A stretch of DNA of 64,000 nt from Kudoa neothunni (GCA_964304625.1 OZ199838.1:10929607-10993606), one strand, 5' to 3'; numbered from the stretch's first letter, positions 10,045-58,206 are shown. Notes: a model not told the origin generated them from the sequence alone. Translations and numbers: made by a program.

Positions 10045-13000
10045 TTATTAAAATAATAGAATGGAATAATAAAAAAAGTAACTAAACGTCCAATCATTAT
10101 ATTTTATAATTCGTAATTGAAATCCTTGGAGCATCTAGAGTAAAGGGCGATACCAATAACCACAAAAATTGAAGAAACAATTGGTACCAGAGCATAAATA
10201 CTAAAAAAGATATAAATAATAGATTTTCATATTTACATGTATAGGCCAATAGATCTATTCTAAGATTACACATGAATAAGTTTAATGAAATTTACGAGCT
10301 GATATTCTTCGCAATTGTATGTTCTTGTATCTGTTTGCTACCTACTCATAGTTGGAAATTTATATGTATAGATTATATATATTTTACTAAATACGAAATA
10401 AAGTACATCTATACAAAATTTTTCATCATTTACCCTTTTTCAACTTTTCTTATAAATTTTTTAACAAAATCTTCTATTTCGATGTTTTCGTGTTCACTTC
10501 TTATTTGTTGCTCCTCTAATAATGATTCAATATTTTTTTCATTTTTCATTAATTACTATTAAAATTATAATATTAATAAATATAATAATTTTTATTACCC
10601 TGTTGTTTTTGATAATTTTGAATCTATTTTTTTAAAATAAATATTAATATCTGATACATATACAATATTAGAAATGTTTTTTACATGGAATATCATATTC
10701 TTTATAGGTAGAATAATCTTTCACTTTCACTGATAATACATAATCACTTTCTTTAGACAATCCACTTATATCGATGACACATCCATTGGCTGAACAGTCC
10801 TCGTCATCGTTACACCAAGTTATCGTTGATAAAATATTAGCAGCAATTGTTTTCTCCTTCAGTATGAATGGGCATCTACTATTCTGTGATTTATCGTCAA
10901 AATCCACACGAAATTTCAATTCGATTCCGTCTTTATAACTATAACTAACCGTTGTTTCCTCATCCACTAAATCCTGCTATATTTTTTAAATGTTCAATTT
11001 GTCATACCTGTGGTAATATCATAGGTTTTAATCTTCTTCCCATCGGATGGTTCCACAATCAATTTGTAGATCTTTCCTAATTCTAGATTTATTATTTTGA
11101 ACTCATTATTGCATTTGTTTTCGCAAATTCCCATTCCCTCACAAGTCGCCATATATTTTTTATCCGCATCATCTTGTTTATCAAGATAGACTCTACAAAT
11201 TGGTAGTGAGTCATCCTCTCGAAATGGTGTGACTGTAGCCATTCCATTTTTAATTGTTGCACTTGTATTATTAACAGATAGATCGTCCCCCTCTTCTAAA
11301 CTTATTTAGACGTTGAGATGTTTAAGTTAAATTTTACTTGTTCTAAATATCATCTGTTTTACGTAATTTCCGTTGAAACCAAGGTTAGTAATTGTAACTG
11401 AAATCACATAATTTGTACCAGCATCCAAAGAACCAATTGAATGAGAAGCTTCACAATTATTTTGTGTATGTTTAGTCCTCGTTTTGTTGGGAATAATATT
11501 CGCTTTATATGTTGTTATTGTGCATACTGGAGAATTAGTGTCAGCTTTAATATGGTTGTAAGAATCGAGTCCAGTAATTGTTACTCCTGCTTTTGTAATG
11601 TCACTTAATGTGAAGCCATTATCGTTTCCTATAATGTCTTAGTGACAAATATGATAAATTCGTTTACTTTTGAAGTATTGTTTGAATTTTCTGTTATCAA
11701 ATCTTCTCTGTACGATTACACCAAGTTTTTCTCGTCCTTCCGTCAAAATAATGATGCCGTCTTGACAGAGTTGGTAGCAACCATCAACAACATTTCCACA
11801 TTTATTCAAAATAACATCTTCTTTGTCTGCACCCACATTATCAACTTCAAATACTTTGATATGACACATTTCATTATTGTAAGGGCCAGGTGAGAAATGT
11901 ATTTTAACTTGTTTATTACTTTCACTAACGCCGCTAATGGAAAATATGATGTCAGACTTCAAAGGAATAGTTTCGCGCAAGTATGTATTATTAGTGTAAT
12001 AGATTATTCCTGGCCACATATGTGTGGAATCAACTTTGTAATAACTTATGAATCTATCTACTGGCAGGGAGGCAGACATAGTCGATATGGTGTCGGAATA
12101 ATTTAATAAACTTAGGCCATCTTCCTGAGTTTTGCTGAATTCATCGTTACTACCATCAACTCGAATATCCCATTTTGTCAATGAGTTAGATATATAGGAA
12201 AATTTAATTTTTCCTTCTTTATGACTCAAAGTATACATTTGTTTATGTTTGTAATCTATCAAATAAAATTATTATTTGAAAGATATTCGAATATATTATT
12301 AAATATGAATAATTTCAATATTTATAAATAGAAATGCATGAGTATTAATTATTAAATACCCATTTTAATTGAAAAGACATTCTTTTTTTTGCATGTTTTG
12401 GCTTCTGCATCATTTGAGCCATAACATACCAATACGTATCGATCCATTTTTGAGTTGATGAATCCAATTTCATCACCTCTAGAATTACAATCCATCAAGC
12501 AAAAGTCATTATCTGTGCCTACGGAGCACGTAGGTTTTACGAACGCATTGTTATCAAAATTTGATAATTTAACAGCACATTTAGCACCAGTTGGAAATTG
12601 AGTCAGAGAAATCGAGAATTTATCATGTACGTCGTTTTCTTTTGAAACAAACCCCTGTTTTAATTCTCCAAGTCTGGAAAATGCTACAGAAGTATTAAAT
12701 TTGTATTATCACCTAACTTTACCGGGAATAGCAATCTTAAATGGTCCTGATTTTCCTTTAACATATATCATTAATCGGTAGTTATATTTTTTGTTGTATA
12801 AATTGGTTTCAAATTTTATATCGTTGCATTTTTTAATTTGGGGATCATCATTACGAGCATCATCACAGCCAACACACGACTGTATTATTTCAGTCGTTGA
12901 TGCTAAATAAAATTCTTATAGAAATATAATAAATTTGATTACTGTCATTTCCTCCGTGTTTATATAATTGATAATAGCAATTAGTATTACTAGCATCTGA

Positions 13001-16000
13001 AATAGCGTCAACAGGATTTATAACAAGAAGATTTTTTTTCGATTCAGTGGAAATTTTAAATGAAATGCTCTCACCATCTATTAATTATTTATAAAAATTT
13101 AATTAATATTTTATACTTGTTTTTTGACCATTTATAATTTTATTCTTATAATTTCCGGTTGGTACTATTTTTATATCATACGCGACTCCAGAGTAAAGCC
13201 CAATGATGGTGAATGTAGAACTGCATTTATTTACGCATAACTTATTTTCTGAACATATAACTGGATGATAATCGTTCATTGAATCTTTTTCTTTCACGTA
13301 AATAATACATGTGCTTGATTGTATTGCTGAACCTGGAGTGAATGTGAATCCGTCTTTAGTAGGAGACACCGAGGTTTCTCCAGTTGATAGATCAGTTAAT
13401 TCAGCTTAACAAAATGTAATATAGTAACCATTATTCCAAAAAATACTTATTTTATGATAAAAGTATTTTCTTGGAATGTAGTGAGGTATATTTTTTATAG
13501 TTACCATGACATCGTTAGGTAATTCAGCTGGACTCGGTGTTATTTCTATATCAGAGAATGTACATAAAGGGGAAGTAACATCTGTCCTTCCACTCTCACT
13601 CACCAATGGAGCATACGTATTCCAGGATTTCAACGAACACGAAATCGGATTTGAACTTGAAACAGATTGCCCATCATCATCTTTATCGTCATCATCAAGG
13701 TTAACTTTGATCTTTTGCCCGTTAGTCGTCGGAGATGTATCATTTCCATGTTTAACTAAATGGGCTTATTGTTTTAAAATATTTATATTATTACGTAAAT
13801 ATATGTTGTTTTGATAGCCAATAATAGGAACCATTCCTAGTTTAAGAACACGTATTTTGACTGCTTTTACATCTGTTGGTATATTTCCAAAAGTGATTTG
13901 ACTACAAATACTGTAAAAGCAATTATCTCTGTTTTCACATCTGTTCGAAAAAAATTGGTTTGAGGATGAGTAAGTAGCGTCTATCCATTCAAAAGTGCAC
14001 ATTTCAGAGGGATTTTCATTAGTTAATTTAATAGTGAGCTTTTGATCTACTTCGTCAACAGCCAGTTCATAGTAGAATCTACTGAAAACTGGTGCGTGGG
14101 TTTTTACAAATGTATTGTCATAAAAATAATGAAAATCAAAATGTTTAGGACAATCTATGTGATAGTCTTCTACTAGTTCGTCAAACTGTACTGAATAATG
14201 ACCAAAAGTACAAGGAGTTCTTGTGTCGTCTTTTACTTCAGATACTTCGTTTTGTATTTCTGTATCCTTGTAAAATTTACATGACTGCTCACATTTATCC
14301 GATCCCAGTTGTAATTCGTCTCCGCTGAGCTTTGCTACGTAGCTAATGTCCTCGTAATAATCTTAACAAAATTATATTTAATCATTTTATATTATATATT
14401 ACCTATGTAGTACGAAAAAACCTTCCCTTTTTTGAATTTGACCGTTTTTGAGAAGGAAGACGGACTTTGATGATCTTCACGATTTTCGTCAGTGGCTTCT
14501 TCAGTGGTTGTTTTGGTAACATCATAAGTGACAGATATATAATTTAATATATTTTCAAGATTGTGACTAATGGTGAATTCTGTATTAAGTTGTTTACATT
14601 TTATTGTATTTTCTTTTCCATTTACAAGAGCAATTTCATATCCCAATAGTTCAGAGTTAGATCTTTGAACTGTACACTCTTGTTCAGTCCCCTCTATCAC
14701 TCCATCCTTAAACTTAACCTTGTACTCACCAGTTGCTCTGTCGTATTTTAGAATCATGTCGTCCTTCGATTCTTCCACATCTCCTAAAAAAATTAAATTT
14801 ATATTTCATGTATTATATAACTTGTCACTTCTGCCTCAGCTGGGTTAGCTTTATCTTTATTTATCACAACAATCTTATAAAGAACATCAACGCTAAAGTC
14901 TACCCATTGAATATCTAGTGTCTTTTCGGATGTTGCGGTTTTTACATTATTTTTGCAATCGCCATCCAAACAATCAATAATTATTTTATTGGATGCTGAT
15001 TCATAGATAAAATAAGACCACAAATTTCCAAAAGTTTCGGCTGGTGAAATTGTCATTGTAAACGTAACTTTTTTCGCCTCAGTATTACTCTGAGAAACAG
15101 TGAGTGTTGATCCATTAGCTATTTGAAATTAAAAGATTATTCCGTAACTATAATATTACTTTCTACTCCTTCACTTTCAGCACACGTGTATCCTCTTGAG
15201 CATATGGTGATTTTATATGTTGTTTTTGGATCCAGATTAACAATATTAAAATGACCACTGCAAGAACTGAAGCAGAATTTTTTTTCCTCGCCATATTCGC
15301 AAGTCGCGGGAAATTTTGCGAGATCATCATCGCCAAATGAATAGTAAAGTTCACATTGTGCGCCCGAATTATCGTTATTTGAAAAAAGATCAGTTGGCGT
15401 TAAGCTTAATTTCGTAGTTTCACTGTCGTTCTTTGAAAGATTTATTGTCCTAGTCTGTTTGAACTTCTTCCCTATTTTAAATTAGAAAATGATCGATCCC
15501 TATATCTACCTTTTGTTTTGAAATAAATATATCTGTGATAAAATTTTACTTCGGGCGAATCTAACGTGTTGAGTCCTCTTATTTTAAGTTTCAAAACATA
15601 CTCCGTTAATGAATTAAGATTTGTGATTGTGATTGAGCCAAAAGAGGTGCACCCTCCGGTTCCATCGCATGTCGGATTGCCACCGCCATTTTCAATTCCA
15701 AGGTATTTTCTTATAATTGTCATTTCTATGGTTACAGTCTCAGTTGGCGTGATAGAGTCTTCATTTTTATTCAAATCGGATAGATTAATAGTGGCTTGGT
15801 TATTATCACCGATGGTTACACTAGGTTCAATAGTGACAACTAAATAAATGCTAATAAAAAGTTTACAAAAACAAAATTTTACACGTCACGATCTGAATAA
15901 ATTCTTTATACGTTATTTTTACTAGCGGCACTACAATGACTTGAGCAAACTTCAATTCTAAGTCATGATATAATGTTGCTTTGTGGCATGGTTGAAGGCA

Positions 16001-17660
16001 AGGTCCAGCGTTGTTCATATCCGAACAGCGAGAGGAAAAATGCGATTCACTTATTTCTTTTATTCCAAAATAACATATTTTAGATGGTTCCGGGTTTTGA
16101 ATTTTTATAGTGTAAAAGTTTTTCCCACCCGTGGTATGTTTTGATCCAGTTGCAACAAACCAGTTTTCATGAGGTTTTTTCGGATTCAAAAAAATTTGGG
16201 GAGATCGGTTGGTGAACTCGACAATTGACGTAGTTTGATATGATAATGAGCTTAGTCTGAGAGTTTTCTCAACAAAGTTTTCATTGTTTGATGACACAGT
16301 GGTTTCATTGCTGCCATCGACAATAGACTTGAACCCATCGTTTATTTTTCTTTTAACACCGATAGTAAATTCATTAGCTGTCTTTTTCGCAGTCAGTTTC
16401 GTTTTTATATAAATATCTATATAGTACTTTTAAACGTGTACTATTTAAATTGAAAATACCTTTAACAGTATAGACTCTCTTGTTAATGCATTTTTTTACA
16501 TCTTTGTCGTCTTTTCCTTGACACCATCTTACGAACTTTATTTTACTTATATCTGCCACACTTATCTTAAATTCAAGCCTTTTACATTTATAAAGGCACA
16601 TGTTTGATCCTTGGACCACATTCGAACCTATAATGGTACTGCTGCATGCTGAAAACGCTTTTAAGGCTGAATCGTCTCCATCGTAGTACTGAAGTGCGCA
16701 TTTTCTGTTACTATTTTCGATATGGTAGCCGGAGATGGAAAACTTATATTTATCTTCACTACTTAAGAAAGTTAATTTCATAATATTATTGTCTATATTT
16801 TCAACAACATTTTCATCGAGGAGGACTAAAAAAATGAATAGCACAATAATTCTCCGAAGAAATTACCCCTAAGAATAAAAATAAATTCAATCACAACGTA
16901 AACCAGTTCCATTTTATTTTCATTAATAGTTTTAATCGTTAGGCGAAAAATTATATCTACTTACTGTTTCAATACTCAATTGTTTTATTTAAAACAGAGT
17001 AACATTAATCTTATTAAATAACTAGATAATGACTTTTAATTAATTTCATCAATATCAATAAAAAATAATTATTTTAATTTATTTTCTTTACTTCAAAAAT
17101 AATAGCGGAATTTGATTTTTTTATTTAATATTTTAAATATGGGTCGATTTTTATCATTTATTAAAGTCAACACAATTCTACAAAAAGATTCATTTGGTCA
17201 TTCGTAGAAGTGATTTTGACAATTTCTCTGAAATTGTCAATTAAAAGACACTCATTAGAAATAAACTGTTAAATTATTCATAGTAACAATAGAATATATC
17301 CATGTGTAATATTTTTGTTTGTGATTAAAATAAATAATACTATTTGATATGTTATATTCATAAAGATTGGTAAATACCCATTCAATTAATGACCTTCGAC
17401 CTATATCGTTGAGGATACTACGACCTAAAAAGATATTAATAAGTATATTTATCGTATGTAAATATGTTAAATTAAACAAAATTAATATATCATTGTTTCA
17501 AATTATGTTATGAATTTATAAATAACAAATAGATAACAAATTTTAGGCGTAGCATTATTAGCAGGTTATAATAATGTTAATAACCTGTATTTAATTAATT
17601 AAATTCGATATACAATAAAATAGCGCTAATGTATAATTTTCTGTTTAAGCTTTAAATAAC
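10045..17660 (-). repeat. Arm A of a ~7.6-kb inverted segmental duplication (partner 44010-51722)
   Basis: Reverse complement aligns collinearly with 44010-51722; the ORF track also shows mirror-image peptides (e.g. 11639-12262 vs 49506-50129, 10668-10967 vs 50801-51100). Confidence 0.97.
10104..16912 (-). CDS. Gene A: large multi-exon type I membrane protein with ~15 Cys-rich, partly FN3-like extracellular modules
   Basis: ATG at 16912 opens a hydrophobic signal-like exon (MELVYVVIEFIFILR). About 20 exons are separated by tiny GT-AG introns. Modules share C-x(12-16)-C-x(4-6)-C-x3-C followed by an FN3-like F-x-I-x-x-L-x(4-5)-Y-x-I/L-x-I/V ending. Last exon IYALVPIVSSIFVVIGIALYSRCSKDFNYEL* is a TM helix plus short tail; stop at 10104-10106. 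Confidence 0.8.
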
Positions 17661-36526: not shown

Positions 36527-38104
36527 TTAGATAAAAAAATCATCAACCATACTACTCTTGTTTGTCCATCGGTGGTTGATTGATGCTAGAAATTGTTTTT
36601 TTGCGTCATTATAACGACTTTGAGATAGTTTGGCTTCCTTATAATTTCTAAACATTTTTAAAAAACAAACTAACTATAGATAGTTTATTACTTGGAATAA
36701 TTCAAACCAATGTGGTCACAAATTTGAATGTAATTCAAAAATAGTTTTTTCTTGCATAGCTCAGTTCTAAATAAATAAGTCATTTGGTCAATAGTTCGAA
36801 TTATTGTACTAATTTATTACACAATATTAGAACAATTTTTTAAGGTGGTACCGTGTTTACGGCCGTCAACAAAAACAGCCTTAAACTGTGGTTGAATGCA
36901 AAAAGCTACCTCTAAAATTCTAGTGAAACTACTAAGGGATGGATATACGTCACCTTTAGGATAAGGATTTGTTGTCTGTAAGAAATATTCTCCATGATGT
37001 TTAAATGGAATTGATGTGCAATCGATCAATGGAGGCGACTGTTTGAATGGAGGGATTGAACCAATTAAGACTCGTGAATAAGTGGCTCTTTTTATAGATT
37101 CACAACTGTGCAAACAACTGGTTAATAAAATTGAACTCAGGTAAATTGGTTCCTCAAAGAAAGCAGTCAAAAGAGCCCCCTGTATGCCCATGTAGGACCA
37201 TTTCAAAAGTTTATCGCTGCAGCTCATCGAATAACTTGGATATCCTCTTCCAGGTTTCACGCGATAGCAGCTAATCTAAAATAATGTCATATTACATGAA
37301 ATATACTTTATTTACCTTATCCATATTTTGAAGAGAGCGATCGATTTCTGTGTGAGTAGATTGTTGACTGATTACCATTTTGGCACCAGTTAAATTGGAA
37401 AATTTTTTAATTGGCTTTGCTGTTTGATCAAATGGATGTTTCAGTTTTATTTTCTGCTGAATACACTCACACTTGGTGGTTGGGGTAGCGGATTCTTTGT
37501 CCAAATAAAAATTTAACGGATATATATGGGCATCTCCACCTATAAGATTCAACAATAATATCTCAATTTTTTATCAACTCTATGTTAAACTGAAAGTTTG
37601 AACTCTCGCTAAGATCACTTACATGGAGGACGTGTAGACAGAAGATGGAAATCAACACCATCTTCAATCTGAACTCTCCCGTTTTTGTTTACGAAGAAAA
37701 ACTTATCAAATTTTCGACCATACATTTTTAATCCCTTTATGCTGTCATATAGAAAACGCAAAAAACATCGTCTAACTAAAACTTCCGAATGACTATCATT
37801 CAGTGTGGTTCCTAATTAACTGTTAATAAAACGATAACGATATACATGCAATACCTGTATTTGTGTATCTATTTTCTCCAACACAAGTGGTACCAATTGC
37901 CATTGCTATCATTGTGAATTTCTTATATTTATCAGTTGCATAGATGCAAGACATATTTGTCCAATGACTAGGTTGAAAATCTTTACAGTTTTTAATAAAA
38001 TGTTGTTCGTAATAATCAACACATTGTTGAACGTATTCTTCGTGATTTATATCCATGGTTTCGGTAAGTTCTTGTGAGATTTTCCTTTTTCTTGATTTTT
38101 CCAT
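36527..38104 (-). CDS. ADAT1: tRNA-specific adenosine deaminase 1 (tRNA-Ala A37 deaminase, ADAR-family domain without dsRBD)
   Basis: Spliced translation gives AIGTTCVG, LNDSHSEVLVRRCFLRFLY, FHLLSTRPPCGDAHIYP, TGAK, RVKPGRG..S.SMSCSDKLLKWSYMGIQGALL..F.EPIYLSSI, and YKEAK...Y..AK..F.....W..K. No dsRNA-binding domains; stop at 36527-36529. Confidence 0.9.
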
Positions 38105-38334: not shown

Positions 38335-39070
38335 CCTTCCGAACATATTGCATTAAGAATTTTTTATACTTACTAAAATCAAACACAATTTATATATCGT
38401 GTATTCTACTTAAAAGTAAAATTGAATCTTTAATAATTCATTTTATAAAAACATTAAAGTTATAGGAAAAATAAATACACTTTATACATTTTAAGCTTTT
38501 TAGAGTCTATTAGATCCCATAATTTTATACCATTAAAACAAGAAAAATTATATAATGCATCAAGTTAAAATCAAAACAGATTCTATTGAATAAATTAAGA
38601 GAAAATAACGAAACAAACTATAACGATAATCTGCGAGTAATGCCGAAGCATACGACTGTAGATATGAGTGCCTCTGACGATATATATTATGATAATTATG
38701 TTCATGATTGCAGCGAATCCGTTGATGTGAAACAATATAGCGATAACTTGTCCGATTCTTTCGAACCTGATGATAATAATATTGACTTCCTTGATGTATA
38801 CCTCGACAAAAATGGTGTAATATGGAGTACTGAAATTTCAAAAACATCAAAAATGCAAAAAGAAACTATTGTAAACAAAGCCCCAGACGTTGCTGCTTAT
38901 GCAACACATAGAATAAAGGAATTTTCGGCTTGCTTAGATATATTTTTTGGTGATGGCATATATGATACTATAATACCTAATACAAATAAATTTGGCTCAT
39001 ATTACTACAGTCGGTCCTGGAAACAATTATGAAATGTGGAATTTCGCGCCTACATAGGTGTACTAATGGC
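38335..39070 (+). mobile_element. 5' fragment of a piggyBac transposon, truncated by a MULE
   Basis: Acidic N-terminus then DKNGVIWS...LDIFF.D.I...I..NTNK...WK.L..VEFRAYIGVLM, typical of piggyBac transposase N-terminal regions. Tentative left end CTAA|CCTTCC at 38335. Confidence 0.7.
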
Positions 39071-40570
39071 ACGGCAAGAACTCGTCGGGGCTACTACGCA
39101 CGCGCACGCGTATGTTCGATTAAATCTATTGTTGAGTCAATAATATGAGTAATGAGTTACCTTCGAATTTAAATTATAAGCCTTTTAAAACTCAAAGAGA
39201 CAGTATTAAAATTCTCTTTGGAAGTTATTTTTATGTTCATGATTACGCTACAACGACTTATCAATATCGGCGATCTGAAAAGAGGACTTGCAAGGGCAGG
39301 CTTACAAATACTCCATTAAATAACATTTCAAATATTGAAAAACGTGGTATTCACAACCATATTGTAAGCGACGATGACATTAAGAGGGCCGAATTTTTTG
39401 GAAAAATAAAATCATTATCGCAATCTACACAGTACTCCACAAGCAAAGTTTTCTCAGTTGCAACTACCACAACGAATATTCATGATTTACCCCTTGTTCC
39501 CAGGAAAACGGTTTATAATAATATTCAACATCAAAGGAAGAGAGCAAATATTTTAATTGATACAGATATTGATCTATCCAAATCAGGAATTAAAACTCAT
39601 AGGGACGAAGAGTTCTGTTTATATTTACGACTAAAACTAATATAATGCATCTTAATAATTCGTTGGTTTGGATTGCAGATGAGACGTTTAACGTAGTACC
39701 CGAACAATTTTACCAACTTTATATAATACACGGGGGAATTTTTACTAAAGTGTTTCCATTAATTTATATTTTGATGCCTAATAAAACCCAAATTGATTAT
39801 AAGAAAGTCCTTAATATTCTAACTGAAAATATGAATACCAAGGTCCCTGATACATCAGTTTAGATATGGAATTAGCTGCTATGAACGCTTTTAAAATAGC
39901 ATCAAAATTATCTAACGTGTATTTATGTTTATTTCATTTAGGACAATGCTTGTGGCGAAAGATTCAAGAATTGAGGCTTACAGATATATATATATATATA
40001 TATATACTACTATTCCAAACATTAACCTATTACTTAAATGTTTTTCATCCTTATCATTTGTCCCTGTTGCGAAGGTCGTTGAAGAATTTGAAAAATTGAA
40101 GGCAAAATCGTTAACCTATGAAAACGAGAAACTACATGAATTCATAAATTACTTCGAAGAGAATTTCATTATTTCATCAAAATATCCCATTCAATATTGG
40201 AACACATACGGAAGAGTGAAATGCAATATCGACATGACCATTAATGCTGCGGAACTGTTTCACCTACATTTTCAAAATAGATTTGAACAATACCTCTCTG
40301 GCCTAGATACGTTTGTTGAAAAACTCAAAGCCTGGTGGAACAAGATATCAACTGTGTCTTATATAACCCAATTGTAAGTAAAAAATCCAAATATCAACGC
40401 AAAATGGAAAAAATCCATATTTGTGAAAATTATTATGGTTACATTTCAACTTTTTTTGTGGAATCGATTTCAATAACGTTTAATTGGAAATATAATCAAA
40501 TCTGGTTATTTTATTCGAGAAGTATAAATAACGGTATATTTTCTTAGTTTGCGCTGGCAAGTTATCGCCG
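39071..40570 (+). mobile_element. MULE (Mutator-like) transposon with FLYWCH-like and MULE domains, frameshifted
   Basis: TCKGRL...HNH zinc-finger relic; WIADETFNVVPEQFYQLYIIHG; FPLIYILMPNKT..Y; DMELAAMNAF; CLFHLGQCLWRKIQ; YFEENFI; TINAAE.FH. Disrupted by stops and a (TA)n run at ~39984-40006. Termini approximate. Confidence 0.85.
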
Positions 40571-42026
40571 CGCGGAGTGTGAATTGTTTTTAAAATCCAA
40601 ATAAAGACGAACAAACTTGCCTTGGTTTGTTTGGCATGAATTCTGGTGCAATGAATGTCCTACACATACGAACTGTCCCAAGGATCGACGTCTTACGTTT
40701 CTATAGGTACTCAGCAAGTTTCCAAGTTGCGGAGTAATTATCACAGGTGACGCTCCTACCTGAGTAATGTAAATGGTCAATGAGCTCAGTTACAACTTTA
40801 AGACTCAAGGTTTTCTCTCTGTTTTCATTTTGTTGGCCAATGTACGGTATGATGTTGGAAACATAGCGTGTATCGCTGTCGCATACCATCCAAAAACTTT
40901 ATACCATCTCGGATGGTTTTTGGGCATGTAAATCAAAAACTTCGATCCCCCTCTGAATGGATACAACTGTTCATCAACAGTGATATTAGATCCAGGAATA
41001 GAGCTTGTCTTACAAATTTTTACAAAAGATTCGAATACATTTTTTTGGTAAAAAGACGTCATCGGACCTAACATTTTTTTCCCTAACCAATATTTATCGA
41101 ATCTAAGACAGAGCAGAAATCTTTTTGAAACGGTCACACGACATTGTTGCACGAAACAATAGTGTATCATGAATTTCGTGCCATAAAATTTTGGTATCTT
41201 CATTATTAGACTTGTTTGCTCCAGAAAGTAATAAAAGTTCCGAACAAGCTTGAAATTCTCTAAAATCTAAAGGTTTCCATCTCTCACCAAGAGCCTCTAA
41301 ATCTTTTTTGTTTGTGTAGAGAATAATTTCTTCTATTATTTCCAATTTCATGAAGTGATAAAAGGTGCTCTCTGGCGTTGAAGTATTAATATCATCAATA
41401 GATGTTCCAATCAGTTTATTGTCATCAATAATATTATTGCGGAAGTTCTTCCCAGTTTAGATTGTGACGCCCCAAACAAGTGATTTATCCTTTGAGATAT
41501 AAACATTTTTGTTGCAGGTGGCGTTATCACTTATCTGGGTCGACTCTTCGTTGTTTTTGTTGTTGTTATTGGAGTTGATTATCATATTTAAATTGTTTTC
41601 AGGTTGAATTTATGAAATATTAAATATCCTTAATTATAAACACAGCTTACAGTTTAAACCAAATTCTTCGTTTGATTCATTATTAGCCAAATAATCTATC
41701 AGTTCTATGGAAAAAAACACTTTCGGTGTCTGAAGATGAACAATCAAATGAAAAATCAGGACTCTGCCATTATGTATCGTGCCGCGATTTTTAGGGTTAA
41801 TTCAAATCACAATCGTCATAAACGTATTAAATAATGTTAACGCGAAGCCTAGTTTGGGCCATTAAATATGGGGGAAAATTTTTTCTCTTCAAATTCTGCG
41901 CATGAATAGAAAAAATGATTTCACCAGGTTACTTAAAATATGGACTTCAAAAATCCTCAATTTAAGTTACTTTAAGCCATTTAATACGCAGGTGGGTTCG
42001 TAGAGCCCACGGTTGTCGATTAAGGG
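40570..42026 (-). mobile_element. 5' part of a second piggyBac transposon (pseudogenised)
   Basis: Terminus TTTA|CCCTTAATCGACAACCGTGGG on the minus strand at 42026. Motifs IILYTNKK, FRATMSCDRF, LRFD, ITVDEQLYPFRG...IYMPK, VCDSDTRYV and GRSVTCDNY are spread over several frames. The 3' end is missing. Confidence 0.88.
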
Positions 42027-42077: not shown

Positions 42078-42262
42078 TGTTACACCCTGTAATGCAGGTA
42101 CAAAAATTTTCCCACTCAACATATTCCAGAGTATGCCGTGCATACACGGACGGCACGCGCCTGGCGTTTTATGATTGGGAGCGTGTGTGTGCCATGTAGA
42201 TGCATTCCACGGGGTGGAATGCACTGTGCGATTCATAGTGCCGGCTGACGTGAATTGTGTAT
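42078..42262 (-). ncRNA. Candidate Sm-class small structured RNA of unknown family
   Basis: GC-rich island. Minus strand has a perfect 10-bp hairpin UGCAUUCCAC-CCC-GUGGAAUGCA, a ~70-nt nested hairpin (UCCCA/UGGGA, CCAG/CUGG, GUGCCGU/ACGGCAU), then AAUUUUUG (42108-42101) and a short 3' hairpin (CCUG/CAGG). Confidence 0.5.
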
Positions 42263-44009
42263 TGATTTATAATACCTAGGTATATATACCCGTTTTAATG
42301 CTATTCTCAAGATTATCATAGGTTCAAACGTTAATGGTTGTTTCCTCATCAGAAATTTATTCAGTTTTAAGGAACGATTACGACAAATTTTTATTGCATT
42401 GCGGCACCCCCACTAATTTAGACCACGAACCTACACTGATTATTATATAAAGTACATCTGCTATTTTGGTGATCATTCTCGCCATAGACCATATAGGATG
42501 TAAAAGAGCATAAAGTTTAAAGGCACCTGCCAAGCTCCTTTTAAGGTAAGAGTCAGTTCCAATGGAGGAACACTTGATAAAACTTTGCATCTAGAATATA
42601 ACAACGATAGGAATCAGAATTCCTTCAAGTGTTTACCACCATAACGTAAATTAGACCACAATGATAAATTAATATTCGAATTGATTTCTAGGGATATTAT
42701 CAAAAAATTGCATTATTTTTAATAAAATAAGAAGCAGATAAAATAAGTACACCAAGGCCATAAACAATACGAAAAATAAATTTTCCTAACCAAATGAAAT
42801 AAATTATTTTATCAAATTTTAACCCTGGATTATAACTGTGGTGTTAGAATTCTAATTGGAAATGCGAATCAGTTTTTCACAATAATATTTTTAGATGATG
42901 AGATGAAGAGGGTTTTTTCCCTTTACACAGAATTAGTTTGTGTTAATGAAACCTATAAATTGCCGGATTCACAGTAAAAACTCAAAATTCATGTTTTATT
43001 CATTTTTTAACTCACGAGAATATTAAACTTTTGTAACGCTCCCTTATAACTAACATTTAACGATTATCCATGAAATGAGTCATATGTGTAGTGCCTGTAT
43101 CGTTTATAAAGAGAAAAAAGTTGTTTAAAACTAGTATATTAATGAATTAATATCTACTCTTCCATCGATTTAAGAATAGATATTTCATTTGTTTTTATGG
43201 ATAAAGATTTAAAATTTCGGAAATTCATGAAAATAATAACACATTAATTAAAAGATCTGATGTTAGAAATGAAGACGATTATAAGAATATGTGTGTTCAG
43301 CTCTATAGCTATAATGTTGAGGATTTAAAAAAGAATTGGGATCGAATTCGCTCACAGTGGATTGTTTTATCGGACAATGTAACATCATTAAATTCTATTG
43401 GAATACTAAGTTTTCAACCGCAGTGTACCTTCTTTCATTATAAGTAGATCTTATACTCCCTAAAAAGCTTAAGGCAGTAAGAAGACCAAAAGAGTATGGA
43501 GAAAACGCAATTAGACGGGGAAAAATATAGAAATTAAAATATTATATAATTAAATTATAAATTCGGAATTATAATTAAGTTACTCCATGGTTTATTAATC
43601 ATTTTTGCATAATTATCTGTATTTATCGTGAAATTTTAATGCACTTGCAGTGAAATCAATGAATATGTGATATTTATTTGATCCGCAAGTCCGATTTTGG
43701 TGTAAATATATCCATTAATTATTTTTCTTGTTTAAAACTGAATAATTTTACTCTCAAATGTTTAATAATATGGATACTGTTACGATAACATGTGTGAAAA
43801 ATTACGGTATATATGCTGCGTAGGTCCGAAATTAGGTGAATGAATTTTCCTATGAAAATTATAATTTTTGTAGCAAAAAAAGTGCTAATTACAAATAACT
43901 AAACAAAAATATGTAATGTTTTGTGGTTATGGAGAAATTCGTTTTCGTGGAAATAGACAGCTCCGACATGGGATGGACTATACGTTTGCGAGGTAATAGC
44001 CACTGCCAT

Positions 44010-47000
44010 AATTTAAAGATTTCACAGAAAATTATGCACGAGCGCTATTGTATTTTATTTCGAATTTAATTAATTAAATACACGATATTAACATTATTAT
44101 AACATGTAAATAATAATATTTATGCCTAAAAGATTTTATCACTTTGTTATTTATGAATTCTCAACCCATGTAATTTAGAAACTATGAGCTAATTTATTTA
44201 TTTTATCCAAAAATACTTAAATCAGATAAATATACTTATTAATATCTTTTTAAGTCGTAGTATCCTCAACGATATAGGTCGAAGGTCATTAATTGAATGG
44301 GTATTTACCAATCTTTATGAATATAACATATCAAATAGTATTATTTATTTTAATCACAAACAAAAATATTACACATGGATATATTCTATTGTTACTATGA
44401 ATAATTTAACAGTTTATTTCTAATGAGTGTCTTTTAATTGACAATTTCAGAGAAATTGTCAAAATCACTTCTACGAATGACCAAATGAATCTTTTTGTAG
44501 AATTGTGTTGACTTTAATAAATGATAAAAATCGACCCCATATTTAAAATATTTAAATAAAAAAATCAAATTCCGCTATTATTTTTGAAGTAAAGGAAAAT
44601 AAATTAAAATAATTATTTTTTATTGATATTGATGAAATTAATTAAAAGTCATTATCTAGTTATTTAATAAGATTATGTTACTCTGTTTTAAATAAAACAA
44701 TTGAGTATTGAAACAGTAAGTAGATATAATTTTTCGCCTAACGATTAAACTATTAATGAAAATAAAAATGGAACTGGTTTACGTTGTGATTGAATTTATT
44801 TTTATTCTTAGGGGTAATTTCTTCCGGAGAATTATTGTGCTATTTCATTTTTTTTAGTCCTCCTCGATGAAAATGTTGTTGAAAATATAGACAATAATAT
44901 TATGAAATTAACTTTCTTAAGTAGTGAAGATAAATATAAGTTTTCCATCTCCGGCTACCATATCGAAAATAGTAACAGAAAATGCGCACTTCAGTACTAC
45001 GATGGAGACGATTCAGCCTTAAAAGCGTTTTCCAGCATGCAGCAGTACCATATAGGTTCGAATGTGGTCCAAGGATCAAACATGTGCCTTTATAAATGTA
45101 AAAGGCTTGAATTTAAGATAAGTGTGGCAGATATAAGTAAAATAAAGTTCGTAAGATGGTGTCAAGGAAAAGACGACAAAGATGTAAAAAAATGCATTAA
45201 CAAGAGAGTCTATACTGTTAAAGGTATTTTCCAATTTAATAGTACACGTTTAAAAGTACTATATAGATATTATTATAAAAACGAAACTGACTGCGAAAAA
45301 GACAGCTAATGAATTTACTATCGGTGTTAAAAGAAAAATAAACGATGGGTTCAAGTCTATTGTCGATGGCAGCAATGAAACCACTGTGTCATCAAACAAT
45401 GAAACTTTGTTGAGAAAACTCTCAGACTAAGCTCATTATCATATCAAACTACGTCAATTGTCGAGTTCACCAACCGATCTCCCCAAATTTTTTTGAATCC
45501 GAAAAAAACCTCATGAAAACTGGTTTGTTGCAACTGGATCAAAACATACCACGGGTGGGGAAAAACTTTTTACACTATAAAAATTCAAAACCCGGAACCA
45601 TCTAAAATATGTTATTTTGGAATAAAAGAAATAAGTGAATCGCATTTTTTCCTCTCGCTGTTCGGATATGAACAACGCTGGAACCTTGCCTTCAACCATG
45701 CCACAAAGCAACATTATATCATGACTTAGAATTGAAGTTTGCTCAAGTCATTGTAGTGCCGCTAGTAAAAAATAACGTATAAAGAATTTATTCAGATCGT
45801 GACGTGTAAAATTTTTGTTTTTGTAAACTTTTTATTAGCATTTATTTAGTTGTCACTATTGAACCTAGTGTAACCATCGGTGATAATAACCAAGCCACTA
45901 TTAATCTATCCGATTTGAATAAAAATGAAGGTGTTAATAAAGTTAACCGAGGCTGCAACCATCGAAATGAAACTTATAAGCAAATATCTTGGAATAGAAA
46001 GTGGCGGCGTCAAGCCAACATGCTCCGGAACCAATGGGTGCTCCACTTCTGGCTCAATCACAATCACAAATCTTAATTCGTTAACAGAGTATGTATTGAA
46101 ACTTAAAATAAGAGGACTCAACACGTTAGATTCGCCCGAAGTAAAATTTTATCACAGATATATTTATTTCAAAACAAAAGGTAGATATAGAAAGTGGTCG
46201 TTTTCTAATTTAAAATAGGGAAGAAGTTCAAAGACACTAAACAAATTAATCCTTCAAAAAAACGGCAATGAACCTACGAAATTAAGTTTAAACGCCAACT
46301 GATCTCCTCTCAAATGAAGATAATTCAGATGCACAATGTGAACTTACTACTCAGTTAACGAGAAAGGTTCCGCGAAATTTCCTGCTACTTGTGAAGTTAA
46401 TAATCAGAAGAAATTCTGCTTTAATACATGCAGTGGTTATTTTAGTATTGTTAACCCTGAATCCAAAAAACAATATATAAAATTACCATATGCACCAAAG
46501 GATACACATGTGCTGAAAGTGAAGGAGTAGAAAGTAATATAGATATAAAAAATATTTTAATTTCAATAGCTAGTGGAGCAATACTCACTGTTTCTCAGAA
46601 TAGTACCGAGGCTCAATGGGTTACTTTTAAAATGACAGTTTCACCAAACTGAAATAGTTGGAAATTTTTGGTCTTATTTTATCTATGAACGGGTATCTAA
46701 AAAAATAGTGTTATTGATTGTTTGGATGGCAACTGCAAATATAAAGTAACAACTACAACAGAAGGAGGAAATACATTAAATATTCAATGGGCAGATCTTA
46801 ACATTGACGTCTTTTTATAAAATTGTTGTTATAAATAGAGATAAAGCTAATCCAGCTGAGGCAGAAATAACAAGTTGTATAATAAATTTAATATAAATTT
46901 AATTTTTGTAGGAAGAGATGAAACAAAAATGGATTACATGATTTTAAGATATGGTACAAGAGCGAATGCATACAATGTTATGTTTAATGAAGGAGTGATC

Positions 47001-50000
47001 GAGAGAACTGGAAAAGATTGCACAGTCAGAAGATCAAACCCTGAACTATCGGGCTACGAGAACACTGATTAAATCGCAAAGAAAATAAAAAATGTGAAGA
47101 ACTTAATATAAAATTTACTATTAGTCACAAACCTGGAAATGAATTAAATTATATATCTGTTACTTATGAAGATAGCAAGAAGATCACTTAAAAAGGTCTA
47201 CTCAAAAGGATAGTGGTGATGGTGGTCTTAAAGATGATCAAAGTTCGTCTTTAACGTTACCATCCGCAACAACCGAGGAAACTGTCAAATTCAAAAAAAG
47301 GAAAAGGTTTTTTCATATTACATAGGTAATATATAATATAAAATGATTAAATATAATTTTGTTAAGATTATTACGAGGACATTAGCTACGTAGCAAAGCT
47401 CAGCGGAGACGAATTACAACTGGGATCGGATAAATGTGAGCAGTCATGTAAATTTTACAAGGATACAGAAATACAAAACGAAGTATCTGAAGTAAAAGAC
47501 GACACAAGAACTCTTGTACTTTTGGTCATTATTCAGTACAGTTTGACGAACTAGTAGAAGACTATCACATAGATTGTCCTAAACATTTTGATTTTCATTA
47601 TTTTTATGACAATACATTTGTAAAAACCCACGCACCAGTTTTCAGTAGATTCTACTATGAACCTGGCTGTTGACGAAGTAGATCAAAAGCTCACTATTAA
47701 ATTAACTAATGAAAATCCCTCTTGAAATGTGCACTTTTGAATGGATAGACGCTACTTACTCATCCTCAAAACCAATTTTTTTCGAACAGATGTGAAAACA
47801 GAGATAATTGCTTTTACAGTATTTGTAGTCAAATCACTTTTGGAAATATACCAACAGATGTAAAAGCAGTCAAAATACGTGTTCTTAAACTAGGAATGGT
47901 TCCTATTATTGGCTATCAAAACAACATATATTTACGTAATAATATAAATATTTTAAAACAATAAGCCCATTTAGTTAAACATGGAAATGATACATCTCCC
48001 GCAACTAACAATAACAAGATCAAAGTTAATATTGGCGCTAACAATAAAGATGAAGATGGGAAATCTGTTAACGGAGTCACTTACGACCGCATGCTCATTG
48101 AAGATCTGGAATACGTATGCTCCATTGGTGAGTGAGAGTGGAAGGACAGATGTTACTTCCCCCTTTATGTACATTCTCCGATATAGAAATAACACCGAGT
48201 CCAGCTGAATTTACCTAACGATGTCATGGGTCCAGCTGAATTACCTAACGATGTCATGGTAACTATAAAAAATATACCTCATTATAACCCAAGAAAATAT
48301 TTCTACCATAGAATAAGTATTTTTTAAAATAATGGTTACTATATTACATTTTGTTAAGCTGAATTAACTGATCTATCAACTGGAGGAATCTCTGTGGCGT
48401 CGAAATCAGACGGATTCGAATTCACTCCGAGTTCATTAGCACAATCAATCACATGTACTATTTATGTGAAAGAAAAATATTCAAGGAATGGTTATTATCC
48501 AGCTATTTGCTCAGAAAATAAATTATGCGTAAATAAATGCAGTTCTACATTCACCATCATTGGGCTTTACGCTGGAGTCGCGTATGATATAAAAATAGTA
48601 CCAACCGGAAAATATAAGGATAAAGTTATAAATGGTCAAAAAACAGGTATAAATATTAATTAAATTTTTAATTAAAAATTAATAGATGGTGAGGGTATTT
48701 CATTTAAAATTTCAACTGAATCTAAGAAAAACCTTCTTATTATAAATAATATTGGCGCTATTACTGATATTAGTGATATAAATTGCTATTATCAATTTTA
48801 TAGACACGAAGGAGATGATAGTAATTAAATTTGTTAAATTACGATAAAATTTTATTTAGCTTCGCCGACTGAAATAATACAATCCTGTATTGGATGTGAT
48901 GTTAATGATGATGGTGATAATGATCCCCGAATCAAAAAATGCGGCGATATAAAATTACAAGACGATTTATACAACAAAAAATATAACTACCGATTAATGA
49001 TATATGTTAAAGGAAAATCAGGACCATTTAAAATTGCTATTCCCGGTAAAGTTGGGTGATAATACAAATTTAATATTTCTCTAGCATTCTCCAGGCATGG
49101 AGAATTAAAACAGGTAATTGTTTCAAAAGGAAACAACGCATATGATAAATTCTCCATTTCGATGTCCCAATTTCCAGACAACAACAGATGCGTTGTTAAA
49201 TTATCAAATTTTGATAACATTGCATTCGTAAAACCGACGTGCTCTTTAGGCACAGATAATGACTTTTGCTTGATGGATTGTAATTCTAGAGGTGATGAAA
49301 TTGGATTCATCAACTCAAAAATGGATCGATACGTATTGGTATGTTATGGCTCAAATGATACAGAAGCCAAAACATGCAAAAAAAAGAATGTATTTTCAAT
49401 TAAAATGGGTAATTAATAATTAATACTCATGCATTTCTATTTATAAATATTGAAATTATTCATATTTAATAATATATTCGAATATCTTTCAAATAATAAT
49501 TTTATTTGATAGATTACAAACATAAACAAATGTATACTTTGAGTCATTCAGAAGGAAAAATTAAATTTTCCTATACATCTAACTCATTGACAAATTGGAA
49601 GATTACAGTTGATGGTAAAAACGATGAATTCAGCAAAGATCAAAATAATGTTTTGAGTCTACCAAGTTATTCCGACACCATATCGACTATGTCTGCCTCC
49701 CTGCCAGTAGATAGATTCATAAGTTATTACAAAATTGATTCCACACATATGTGGCCAGGAATAATCTATTACACTAATAATACATACTTGCATGAAACTA
49801 TTCCTTTGAAGTCTGACATCATATTTTCCATTAGCGGCGTTAGTGCAAGTAATAAACAAGTTAAAATACACTTCTCGCCTGGCCCTTACAATAATGAAAT
49901 GTGTCATATCAAAGTATTTGAAGTTGATAATGTGGGTGCAGACAAAGAAGATATTATTTTGAATAAATGTGGAAATATTGTTGATGGTTGCTACCAACTC

Positions 50001-51722
50001 TGTCAAGACGGCATCATTATTTTGACGGAAGGACGAGAAAAACTTGGTGTAATCGTACAGAGAAGATTTGATAACAGAAAATTCAAACAATACTTCAAAA
50101 GTAAACGAATTTATCATATTTGTCACTAAGACATTATAGGAAACGATAATGGCTTCACATTAAGTGACATTACAAAAGCAGGAGTAACAATTACTGGACT
50201 CGATTCTTACAACCATATTAAAGCTGACACTAATTCTCCAGTATGCACAATAACAACATATAAAGCGAATATTATTCCCAACAAAACGAGGACTAAACAT
50301 ACACAAAATAATTGTGAAGCTTCTCATTCAATTGGTTCTTTGGATGCTGGTACAAATTATGTGATTTCAGTTACAATTACTAACCTTGGTTTCAACGGAA
50401 ATTACGTAAAACAGATGATATTTAGAACAAGTAAAATTTAACTTAAACATCTCAACGTCTAAATAAGTTTAGAAGAGGGGGACGATCTATCTGTTAATAA
50501 TACAAGTGCAACAATTAAAAATGGAATGGCTACAGTCACACCATTTCGAGAGGATGACTCACTACCAATTTGTAGAGTCTATCTTGATAAACAAGATGAT
50601 GCGGATAAAAAATATATGGCGACTTGTGAGGGAATGGGAATTTGCGAAAACAAATGCAATAATGAGTTCAAAATAATAAATCTAGAATTAGGAAAGACCT
50701 ACAAATTGATTGTGGAACCATCCGATGGGAAGAAGATTAAAACCTATGATATTACCACAGGTATGACAAATTGAACATTTAAAAAATATAGCAGGATTTA
50801 GTGGATGAGGAAACAACGGTTAGTTATAGTTATAAAGACGGAATCGAATTGAAATTTCGTGTGAATTTTAACGATAAATCACAGAATAGTAGATGCCCAT
50901 TCATACTGAAGGAGAAAACAATTGCTGCTAATATTTTATCAACGGTAACTTGGTGTAACGATGACGAGGACTGTTCAGCCAATGGATGTGTCATCGATAT
51001 AAGTGGATTGTCTAAAGAAAGTGATTATGTATTATCAGTGAAAGTGAAAGATTATTCTACCTATAAAGAATATGATATTCCATGTAAAAAACATTTCTAA
51101 TATTGTATATGTATCAGATATTAATATTTATTTAAAAAAATAGATTCAAAATTATCAAAAACAACAGGGTAATGAAAATTATTATATTTATTAATATTAT
51201 AATTTTAATAGTAATTAATGAAAAATGAAAAAAATATTGAATCATTATTAGAGGAGCAACGAATAAGAAGTGAACACGAAAACATCGAAATAGAAGATTT
51301 TGTAAAAAAATTCATAAGAAAAGTTGAAAAAGGGTAAATGATGAAAAATTTTGTATAGATGTACTTTATTTCGTATTTAGTAAAATATATATAATCTATA
51401 CATATAAATTTCCAACTATGAGTAGGTAGAAAACAGAAACAAGAACATACAATTGCGAAGAATATCAGCTCGTAAATTTCATTAAACTTATTCATGTGTA
51501 ATCTTAGAATAGATCTATTGGCCTATACATGTAAATATGAAAATCTATTATTTATATCTTTTTTAGTATTTATGCTCTGGTACCAATTGTTTCTTCAATT
51601 TTTGTGGTTATTGGTATCGCCCTTTACTCTAGATGCTCCAAGGATTTCAATTACGAATTATAAAATATAATGATTGGACGTTTAGTTACTTTTTTTATTA
51701 TTCCATTCTAATATTTTAATAA
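44010..51722 (+). repeat. Arm B of the ~7.6-kb inverted segmental duplication (partner 10045-17660)
   Basis: Collinear reverse-complement match to arm A; near-identity begins at ~44225 (equivalent to ~17453) and ends at ~51722 (equivalent to ~10045). Confidence 0.97.
44768..51663 (+). CDS. Gene B: paralog of gene A (Cys-rich FN3-like type I membrane protein) with apparent frameshifts in the 5' half
   Basis: Same ATG exon (44768), exon order and terminal TM exon (stop 51661-51663) as gene A. Numerous 1-nt indels between ~44800 and ~48250 and a 30-bp tandem duplication at 48199-48259 break the frame, so this is either a pseudogene or sequencing error. Confidence 0.7.
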
Positions 51723-52420
51723 TTGTCTGTGCTGAATTTTGACATAAATCCCCTACTCTCAAATTAACATAGGATTAGCGAAATCCAAAAAAAATATGAA
51801 AAACACAACGAATACAAATCTAATTTATAGTACAGAAGGTGACCGGTTTTACGTATTTTTTAAAAAGCAACCCAATTTGAATAATCAAATATACAACTGA
51901 TACATAATATTTTTTTAACGTTTTTGTTAAGAAATTAAGATCTAAATAATATAATAAGATTGAGAAATTCCCAGATTGTTGATCACGTGACTACCAATTT
52001 TCCGCATTTTTTGGAATTTTTTTGAAAAAAGGATGAATTTTTCTTAATATTCAAAGGAATTAAACTATACGATAAAAAATCAAATGGTCACGTAAATTCA
52101 TAAATTACGTCCACCATATCTACCCAACAGATGCCAAATTTGTTGACATAAAACACAAAACGTGTCCTTTATATCCAACCCCTATGGCATCTTAAAAAAA
52201 TAAAATTGTTTAAATGATATAACACAAACCTTTTATTGTTTTCGTTTTATAATTTGTTAAAATGATTCTAAAAAATGATCCAAGTTTGACAGAAAAGGAT
52301 CGATCGATCGATCATGCTCGCGATGGAAAAAGCTATATTCCAACAAAAATATTTTGACGAATTTTGTGTAATAAAAATAACTAATTGTTTTATTTCTACG
52401 AAAAGGAAATTATTTGTTTC

Positions 52421-54860: not shown

Positions 54861-57800
54861 ATGCTTCCAATGATTGGATGTATATGGGTATTTTTTCTTT
54901 TTACATCAAGTAAAATTAAATTATATAAAAATAAGTCTTATCCATTTTTAGCTGAATGTTTGAAATATATTTATACAAACGTTGATCATCTTGCTGACAG
55001 CCGTCTGATGTTTACCGAACTTGCAGACTATGTGTCTACAGGCACCTTCATTACCGCTACTGAAGGTAATGAAAGTACGGAAAAAATAATTAAAGAAGAT
55101 TGTGAGAACATTAATCGTCATCGTGAATGTGAATTGGGCACAACTCATGTGGATATACACGGAACTGGTGATTTATTTTTAAAAGTTATTGAAAATGGAA
55201 AGAAAAAAGTATACAGAATAAACTCTCGTAAAAAATTTTAAAAATTCATATATCTGTTAAATTTAATCATAGAACCCATTCAAAATAATAAAAAGGTGAT
55301 AATTTCGGTCAAGGATCACTTTATCCAAATTAATAAAACTGATAACACTATGAAAGAAAATCCATACTTAGAAATTTTAATGAACAATAAAGTTTTGAAA
55401 TCTACAAAACATGGAAGTGTATCTTCAATGGATACACAAAAAAAGACTATTTCTTTCGAAATAGGAAAGATTGGAACGGAAGATGCAATTTATGAGGTTA
55501 TACACGATCCAACATTACCAACGTATCAATTTAGTTCTGTATTCTCCTACGTGGATCGAACTAATGATTACAAAGTTGAGGGTAGATTAAGAAACGATGG
55601 AAATGATGAAACGTTTTATAATTTTTATCCATATAAAGATGATTTATGTTTATATGAGATGAAAAGTAATAAACGTGGTTCTACATACATTAATGTGTGT
55701 GGAAATGTTAAATGTATCAACTTCTGTAGTGATTTTCACTTCAGAAAAGTTCTTCCGGATGGTTACCAAATGAAAAACATAAAGGTAACACTTTCAAAAA
55801 CAGGCAAAACAAATGAAGTTTCTATTCCACGTAAAAATAACATATTTTACATGATGTAGTTTAATTTTTTAGCTCATAAAAGTTTTCACTCCATTTGTGG
55901 TGCTCGCTGGTTTAGTCTTTCAAATGGAGGGAAAATTGAGCAATGGGTAGATACAGGAAATGATTGCAATAGATTTAATGTCAAGCCATTTGACTACAAA
56001 AGTACACGATTGCCCTTCAAAAAATCCGGAGACCTCTGTTCTAGTGAGAAGGTTGTTCCAGGAAATTTTATTATTGAATATCTACCCCAATCAGACAAAT
56101 TCGTTTATATTTGTGAACTAAGTATTTTATTACAATGATTCAATTTTATTATTACTTTGATAGAAAAAAGATGGTTTCATTATGAGATAATAGAAGGTGT
56201 GAATATGATTCACATTTTTCATCACGATGTGCATTTTATTAGTAGTAACGCAAAATCGAAACAATCAATTGCATCAGGAGAAGAAACTATGTGTAGAGTG
56301 ATGATTTCAACACACGCAGATTTGAATTATGTAGCTGCGAATTGTGACTCATACGGATCATTGTGTTACGATCGTTGTGATGGTACCTTTGATGTGATCG
56401 GATTAAAGTCAAATGTGAAATACTTCATAAAAATTGAATCATTGGGATATTATTCCGATTTTAAATTTACTGGAACTAAGTCTTTGAAAAGTATAATATA
56501 TAGTTGAAAATAATTAATTATTTTTTTAGACGATTTTAGTCCAGAAATAAGATTTAATCAAAATGGCGGCTTGAGACAAATAGTTTTGCAGTTCAATCAT
56601 GTGAGCCAGTCTGAAATAACCAATGGATTATCTTGCCTGATTGTAATGAGAGAAATGATTTCCACTTCAAGCACCAAATATTTCAAAATATGTGGAGAAA
56701 ATATTTACTGTGTTCTACCTTGCAACGATATGGTTCATCAAGTTCCGTCAAACAAAGATTACATCATATATTCGTTAAAAGTTCTAGGAATGATGGATGA
56801 ATTCATTGATCATCAGAATATTTGTAAGGCTCATCAAATTATTATAAATCATGAGTTTAATAACCAATTTTTTAGATTATTCAAATAAAAATATCCAGCC
56901 TAACGCAGTTAAAAATAAAAATATTATGGTATTCAACAAACTCAAATATACAACGTCATCTAAAACCATTGAGCAAGTAATTCGTGAGTCAATCGAAGAA
57001 TATAATAAAATAAGCTTCAACAAAAAATTCCCGTATAAACAATACAAGAAGAATTCGGGTCCAAACGTTTCTAACATCAAAAAGAAGATGCAATATTCAA
57101 CAACTGAATCAATCAGGAAGAAGCAGCAGAGTGGATTCCTTGTAGCTGAAAATGAAGCTGCCCTACCCCCTTCACCACCTATCGAACCAGATTCACCCTC
57201 TAAACCTGATTCCTCAAGTAAATTTATTTTAACGAATGATTAAAGAAATTTTTTATTTATGGTGATAATTTTCTATATTACTTTTTTAAAATTATTTCTA
57301 ATTTTACTATATTTTTCATCTTATTATTAAATATGATTTATTTTATGGAAGGTATTCCATTTTATATATTATATTTTTTTAAATGAAAGTTTATCCATAT
57401 ATAGCCAGATAAATTATATCTAGTTAATTTCTAAAGTAATTAATGTAATTCAAGAATCTTTATTTGAAATCAGTGGAGTTATTTTATTATTGTAGAAACA
57501 ACCATATTATTTTACTATATTTTTGGATAACTATTAATTATTAAATATTTGGTACAATATTATTCATAAACATGGATTTAGCGGATGACAACCCAGCCAA
57601 CGAACCATCTCCTCCAAATATCATTGTAAGCCCCACTCCAAATATCATTGTGAGCCCCACTCCAAGTATCCCCATTCCACCCGATTCAGGTTGATATACC
57701 CATTTCTATTATAAAAAAATTTTTTGTTTCATCAATATTATATTATATTAAATGTAATAAAATTAAATTATAAAAGAATCAAATGAAGTTTTAACCCAAC

Positions 57801-58206
57801 CACCCGACGAAAAATCAACCACACCTTCATCAAGCACTGCCAATACCGAAAATTCTGTAACTCACGTTCCCCCAGGTGATATTTATTGTTTTAGTTTTTT
57901 CTTAATATTTTCATATAGATAATTATGGTATCTATTAAATTTATATCCAACCTTAGGCGATTTAAATTATTACCTAGATAACAAAAACGAAAATTCAAAA
58001 AGGAATGTTGGGTACCTAAAATACAAGTTAATTTATGGTAAATATTTTTAGGTCGGCCAATATATATGTTGGAATGTAAGTTAAAGAGTTGGATTTGTCT
58101 CTTAGTCTCATTTAGAATCGCAACCATCGTCATTCTAGTCGGTATAGTAATAGGTGTATGGACTATTTATAGAAAGCGACAATGGAAAATTATTCATGAA
58201 ATTTAG
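54861..58206 (+). CDS. Gene C: divergent family member with signal peptide, one five-exon Cys/FN3-like cassette, Pro/Ser/Thr stalk and TM helix
   Basis: Signal exon MLPMIGCIWVFFLFTS. Module MCRVMISTHADLNYVAANCDSYGSLCYDRCDGTFDVIGLKSNVKYFIKIESLG aligns with gene A TCIIYVKEKDSMNDYHPVICSENKLCVNKCSSTFTIIGLYSGVAYDIKIVPTG. Stalk exons at 57582-57689 and 57777-57875. Terminal exon IATIVILVGIVIGVWTIYRKRQWKIIHEI*, stop 58204-58206. Confidence 0.8.
57612..57670 (+). repeat. 24-bp coding tandem repeat (PNIIVSPT x ~2.5) in the gene C stalk
   Basis: CTCCAAATATCATTGTAAGCCCCA / CTCCAAATATCATTGTGAGCCCCA / CTCCAAGTATC. Confidence 0.9.

Follow-up and report, generated by a model that had tools for sequence, protein, structure and literature searches.

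The analysed window, a 64-kb stretch of the genome of the fish parasite Kudoa neothunni (64,000 nucleotides; GCA_964304625.1 OZ199838.1:10929607-10993606), contains two inverted copies, A and B, of a gene encoding a predicted multi-module surface protein, which self-comparison of the window recovers as a single inverted alignment (10045-17657 to 51722-44011; 91.7% over 7,735 columns) (Table 1). Copy A is flanked by old, transposon-like direct repeats that are about 71% identical (7943-9947 and 19229-21330), and 177-nt inverted repeats (59941-60117 and 63317-63493; 97.7%) surround a decayed transposase-like region at 61464-62793. Judging from translations inspected by eye, we take the intervals 24300-28100, 33900-36500, 36800-38100 and 63500-64000, the last with RPB6, to contain housekeeping genes, including ATAD3-like, transglutaminase-like and ADAT1-like ones; among these, RPB6 was confirmed by a homolog search. 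Likewise by eye, 1629-2899 (plus strand) presumably represents a prenyl-diphosphate-synthase-like gene, with a frame change near 2110-2135 that we assume to be an intron or an assembly error, and the A-B spacer contains what we take to be fragments of ISXO2-like, MULE-like and piggyBac-like transposases (29177-30149 and 38556-41456). A GC-richer island is located at 42078-42290; Rfam gave no match at gathering score in the 64-kb window, this island included.

Table 1. Features of the inverted gene pair. Block percentages are substitutions between the arms from the HMM segmentation, in copy B coordinates, as read from the assembled sequence.
Feature	Coordinates	Strand	Remarks
Copy A, inverted arm	10045..17657	-	Self-comparison of the 64-kb window
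Copy B, inverted arm	44011..51722	+	Self-comparison; 26.3 kb from copy A, head to head
Non-coding 5' flank, unconverted	44011..44224	+	22% by HMM; 19.6%, about 20%, by another estimate
Identical tract: upstream region, exons 1-3, start of exon 4	44225..45930	+	0.6% by HMM, partly misalignment beside indels; 3 substitutions pairwise, two of them one transposed pair, and 22 one-nt indels
Error-rich zone of B	44535..48260	+	1-2 nt indels private to B, about 40 in total and chiefly insertions, across both kinds of block
Exon 1, short hydrophobic leader	44768..44813	+	Signal-peptide-like by inspection only
Diverged island, exon 4	45931..46049	+	24-26%
Near-identical tract	46050..46190	+	2.1%; 3 differences, all synonymous
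Main diverged block, exons 5-7 and introns	46191..47318	+	21-22%; pS 0.35, pN 0.19
Identical tract: intron 7, exon 8, intron 8	47319..47999	+	0 substitutions in 681 nt
Diverged island, exon 9	48000..48105	+	32%
Near-identical tract holding the suspected assembly seam	48106..48281	+	0.7%
B-private 31-nt tandem duplication, end of error-rich zone	48199..48259	+	Probable read-join seam
Patchy region, exons 9-13	48282..49246	+	Three blocks of 17-20%; outside the error-rich zone of B
Exon 10 module, FN3-like fold	48361..48645	+	Predicted structure of A exon 10 (13118-13402)
Two short identical tracts within the patchy region	48523-48611, 48965-49075	+	HMM segmentation
Near-identical tract including the 104-nt intron 13	49247..49594	+	1.7%; intron 13: 1 difference in 100
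72-nt diverged island, exon 14	49595..49666	+	29%
Long 3' near-identical tract, membrane-proximal exons to 3' UTR	49667..51714	+	0.9%; 720 nt perfect at 49978-50697
Last exon: transmembrane helix and 11-aa tail	51567..51663	+	19-residue hydropathy 2.55; putative splice path from exon 18

The gene model of copy A comprises exons 1-18 (16912-10599, minus strand), with an open frame of 1,848 aa. Every intron from 1 to 17 is in phase 1, 15 of them measuring 38-43 nt, and most exons correspond to one or two modules of ~100 aa, with two modules in three of the exons. From its sequence, the product is predicted to be a surface protein of roughly 1,900 aa, composed of FN3-like modules followed by a transmembrane exon, and a member of a large family. 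For the exon-10 module, the structural model (pLDDT 87) has top matches that are nearly all FN3-type (best Z 9.2, rmsd 2.3 over 84 residues), and the one model of the exon-2 module (pLDDT 79) yields generic Ig-like matches (Z<=7.2), with antibody V domains at a TM of about 0.3. In protein homology searches run exon by exon, the Pfam fn3 family matched 16 of 63 modules at E<=0.1, weakly (best 6.7e-6), two single exons had no Pfam match and the ESM Atlas returned weak leads only. At two places, 51169-51251 and 51334-51429, the acceptor AG and the following donor-like GT share a G, an arrangement conserved in all seven paralogs; simple splicing after exon 18 leads to an early stop. Isoforms of two kinds, secreted and membrane-bound, are possible, as is unusual splicing. 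A stop shared at 50127 proved to be apparent only, the position falling inside an intron.

Genome search uncovered five full-length paralogs (P1-P5) at 70%-76% identity and dozens more at 63%-67%, the family being spread across all three chromosomes, and a module profile scored at least 150 FN3-like modules from 746 candidates in the genome. The window itself contains a third member of the family (54861-58200, plus strand), which is shorter and distantly related and combines an exon-10-like module (E 3e-7) with proline-rich 24-nt repeats and a last exon of hydrophobic character. Outside the genome, the nearest homologs were found at 60%-62% identity in metagenome ENA ERZ28624939 (L029 and L032, same sample), and another at 32% in SRR31175926 (L030), which suggests that the family extends to other myxozoans.

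Along the two arms, eight near-identical tracts (0%-2%) alternate with eight diverged blocks (17%-32%), as delineated by binned differences and HMM segmentation. This sharp-edged mosaic, described in the first-pass annotation, is borne out by the segmentation and by runs of A-B agreement that extend over 187-232 consecutive family-polymorphic sites, versus a null maximum of ~39 (permutation, p<0.0005; 2,537 polymorphic sites in a seven-gene alignment of A, B and P1-P5). The block boundaries drawn at that stage hold within about 20 nt, with the exception of the last diverged island, which starts at 49595 rather than 49540. The region of exons 5-7 (46191-47318) is the most variable one also in all paralog pairs.

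The diverged blocks, with pS of 0.30, pN of 0.16 and about half of the changes being transitions, contain introns that are 5%-29% diverged; their heterogeneity is marginal (p=0.054) and their divergence is in line with that of the non-coding flank (19.6%). Being close to a single class and equal to the flank, these blocks would record the duplication, the identical blocks being younger. Within the latter, pS between A and B is 0.016, whereas the same codons reach 0.48 against P3, so that constraint cannot explain the A/B identity. Silent and intronic sites have been homogenised inside the tracts but are diverged elsewhere; upstream DNA is likewise identical over 540 nt. Tract ends do not respect exon borders, 3 of the 14 breakpoints falling near introns versus 2.5 expected (p=0.47).

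The silent-site pattern, the run test and the single age class support the earlier proposal that an old duplication has been repeatedly homogenised from arm to arm, and we consider it probable that the mosaic results from non-allelic gene conversion between the arms of one old inverted duplication; interlocus conversion itself is a well-known, textbook mechanism. Under this scenario, A and B would descend from a gene for a multi-module surface protein that was duplicated once, long ago and in inverted orientation, and conversion across 26 kb would subsequently have replaced about 69% of the arm, affecting introns and 5' flank as well, through tracts that are all recent but differ in age, with the leftover diverged parts keeping the original ~20%. 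The exchange would presumably proceed through recombinational repair, with the other arm serving as template. Exons 5-7 and the small islands may have been retained either through selection for distinct ectodomains or through lower convertibility of fast-evolving segments.

P1 and P2 constitute a second inverted pair (C3:10155833-10176881; L004, L007, L008) in tail-to-tail orientation, whose 8.1-kb arms are separated by 5 kb; their divergence amounts to 0.2% in the 2.5 kb at the 3' end and reaches about 26% in the remainder. The arms extend ~1 kb beyond the 3' end of the gene, and each copy has a few homopolymer indels. In the direct pair L010/L012, divergence drops from about 20% to 1%-3% toward the 3' end, and no long identical tracts were observed in distant paralog pairs. 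The tracts of the A/B and P1/P2 pairs do not overlap significantly (p=0.14).

The first-pass annotation also allowed for patches imported from other paralogs, an idea that found no support: A and B are each other's closest matches in the two large diverged regions searched genome-wide, and a clade of A+B with 100% support was recovered for 7 of the 9 diverged blocks. In the seven-gene alignment, no significant run links A or B to any of P1-P5, significant long runs being restricted to A-B and P1-P2. When the two large diverged regions were searched genome-wide, the best match of each was the sister copy (76%-78% and 86%), followed by matches at 68%-75%, and no donor closer than the sister copy was found in the assembly. 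A variant of import, in which the duplication is recent (~1% old) and the diverged blocks come from an old allele or a paralog since lost or purged from the assembly, would accommodate the abrupt end of 3' homology near 51714-51730, with almost no diverged flank, and the two short islands 48000-48105 and 49595-49666, which lack a supported A+B clade; in a haplotype-purged assembly, the donors could be missing. Nevertheless, it calls for eight separate imports, including that of the non-coding 5' flank, all at ~20%, and for a donor closer to A/B than to any other paralog; no such donor was seen in the assembly, and we judge this variant improbable.

The quality of the assembly bears on a further alternative. 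The published K. neothunni genome has a size of 40.2 Mb, an N50 of 12.0 Mb, three chromosomes and a GC content of 30.4%; HiFi reads (about 7x) were assembled with hifiasm-meta, followed by Hi-C scaffolding and purging, with no polishing step in the methods (PMC12239612). Its chromosomes measure 17.15, 12.04 and 11.05 Mb, a small contig carries cox1 (total, 40,260,978 bases), and a (TAAACC)n array is found at one chromosome end only, the same one-end motif having been reported previously (PMC12239612). In comparison with A and the paralogs, nearly all A/B indels in 44535-48260 are private to B; the one-nucleotide indels of the identical blocks lie in homopolymers in 26 of 27 cases, with almost no substitutions alongside. 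As assembled, B exons 2-9 are frameshifted. Judging from these features, the zone is probably a single uncorrected HiFi read with a join seam, and the frameshifts, which were masked and never filled in the analyses, are probably read errors rather than pseudogenisation. The 5' half of B probably being one read at ~7x from a diploid, possibly multi-clonal infection, the haplotypes of A, of the 5' part of B and of its 3' part may differ.

Could the identical blocks have arisen because A and B reads were corrected against each other or collapsed, or because haplotigs were placed in cis? The low coverage, the termination of the error-rich zone at a seam within an identical block, the divergence of about 0% in the 5' tracts versus 0.9% in the 3' tract and the residual haplotypic duplication present before purging (PMC12239612) would be compatible with such an artefact. 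However, the blocks alternate every 70-700 nt, far below the length of a HiFi read, and collapse could not leave islands of 70-140 nt inside read-length spans. Correction by A reads would have erased the B indels; these persist inside the A-identical blocks, where B was hence not corrected with A reads. The A-versus-B differences would be unaffected by a swap at the seam, and the true differences possibly erased in the 5' tracts amount to at most about 1%. The error-free half (48282-51714) displays the mosaic by itself, and the P1/P2 pair has the same pattern. Finally, the flanks of A and B are non-homologous, the window is free of N gaps and the spacer genes occur once in it, which argues against haplotigs in cis. 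Accordingly, we regard an assembly origin of the identical blocks as quite improbable.

Selection alone, purifying in some domains and diversifying in others, would match the location of the diverged blocks on more variable codons, but is highly implausible without conversion, given that introns, synonymous sites and upstream DNA match within the identical blocks but differ outside them, and that dN/dS is below 1. Among independent paralogs, amino acid variation is 0.374 in the A/B-diverged versus 0.232 in the identical blocks (1.6-fold; circular-shift p=0.004), whereas variation at four-fold sites among the other paralogs is equal in the two classes (0.249 versus 0.278). The claim that particular patches resist conversion is suggestive only: the patches coincide with family-variable codons, but random tracts of 200-400 nt yield a similar number of islands and dN/dS is below 1. 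Gene-wide positive selection, considered as a candidate, is unsupported (dN/dS of 0.46 in the diverged blocks). The placement of the unconverted patches on codons that are amino-acid-variable throughout the family fits, and does not prove, selection against homogenisation; it equally fits relaxed constraint combined with lower convertibility.

Conversion between old neighbouring duplicates, at a similar distance, with homogenised introns and local islands of divergence, is familiar from the human red/green opsins (about 24 kb apart), RHCE/RHD and Drosophila CG18281/CG17637 (PMC3924837, PMC2588116). The A/B arms differ from all three pairs in being inverted. In those systems, the divergence peaks persist in the orthologues of sister species, and orthologous divergence is flat in the Drosophila case, whereas A/B are judged from the paralogs of a single genome. 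Retention of patches in A/B would fit, by analogy, the selection against homogenisation described for the opsins (PMC3924837) and the Drosophila pair (PMC2588116); the A/B islands, however, coincide with family-wide variable regions, such that relaxed constraint could produce them as well.

Among cnidarians, the Hydractinia Alr proteins combine one to three V-set/I-set domains with one FN3-like spacer, several of them carrying ITAM/ITIM tails, and conversion has been proposed as a source of their diversity (PMC9546547). The Kudoa gene shares with them the cnidarian origin, the clustering of single-pass membrane proteins, the encoding of one domain per exon and a cysteine-containing FN3-like domain (PMC9546547). 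By contrast, the Kudoa protein has about 19 modules (a count from exon sizes), 17 or more ectodomain exons and an 11-aa tail, and a structure search with the one predicted model of its first (exon-2) module gave no V-set match. Given these differences in domain number, V-set and tail, we compare the Kudoa gene with Alr by architecture and fold and do not file it under that family.

Trypanosome VSG, Borrelia vlsE and Anaplasma msp2 are parasite variant-antigen families that diversify through segmental conversion. Certain myxozoans are reported to show antigenic variation, its mechanism not being established there, and VSP- and RIFIN/STEVOR-like genes, which belong to types other than the Kudoa family, have been proposed as surface families in Sphaerospora molnari (bioRxiv 10.64898/2026.02.11.705288). 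The Kudoa family resembles both the variant-antigen families and the S. molnari genes in being a large parasite surface family with constant membrane-proximal and variable distal parts. Unlike in the variant-antigen families, exchange in A/B takes place between two sister arms and lowers their difference, and neither an expression site nor silent cassettes nor donor-to-recipient import were seen; Pfam scans of the exons tested contained no VSP or RIFIN families. Features of cassette-type antigenic variation were sought and rejected: no copying from donor paralogs was seen, and the tract ends do not lie at exon or cassette borders.

We consider it possible, albeit doubtful, that conversion keeps the membrane-proximal modules constant while selection keeps the distal patches distinct, in the service of host-immune evasion or self-recognition, within a large FN3-like repertoire in Kudoa. 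The gene family of FN3-like surface proteins in Kudoa appears to be undescribed: in the literature searched, no paper linking Kudoa to fibronectin type III was found, and the K. neothunni genome paper, which reports about 5,300 predicted genes and hardly any RNA reads of the parasite, is silent on gene families, paralogs and surface proteins (PMC12239612). The value of the present observations lies in this family. For annotators, they imply that the frameshifts of B should probably not be taken for pseudogenisation, whereas for evolutionary studies the divergence islands offer concrete coordinates for asking which ectodomain patches face selection. If true, a selected, conversion-shaped repertoire would be the first molecular candidate for an immune evasion or self-recognition system in marine myxozoans.
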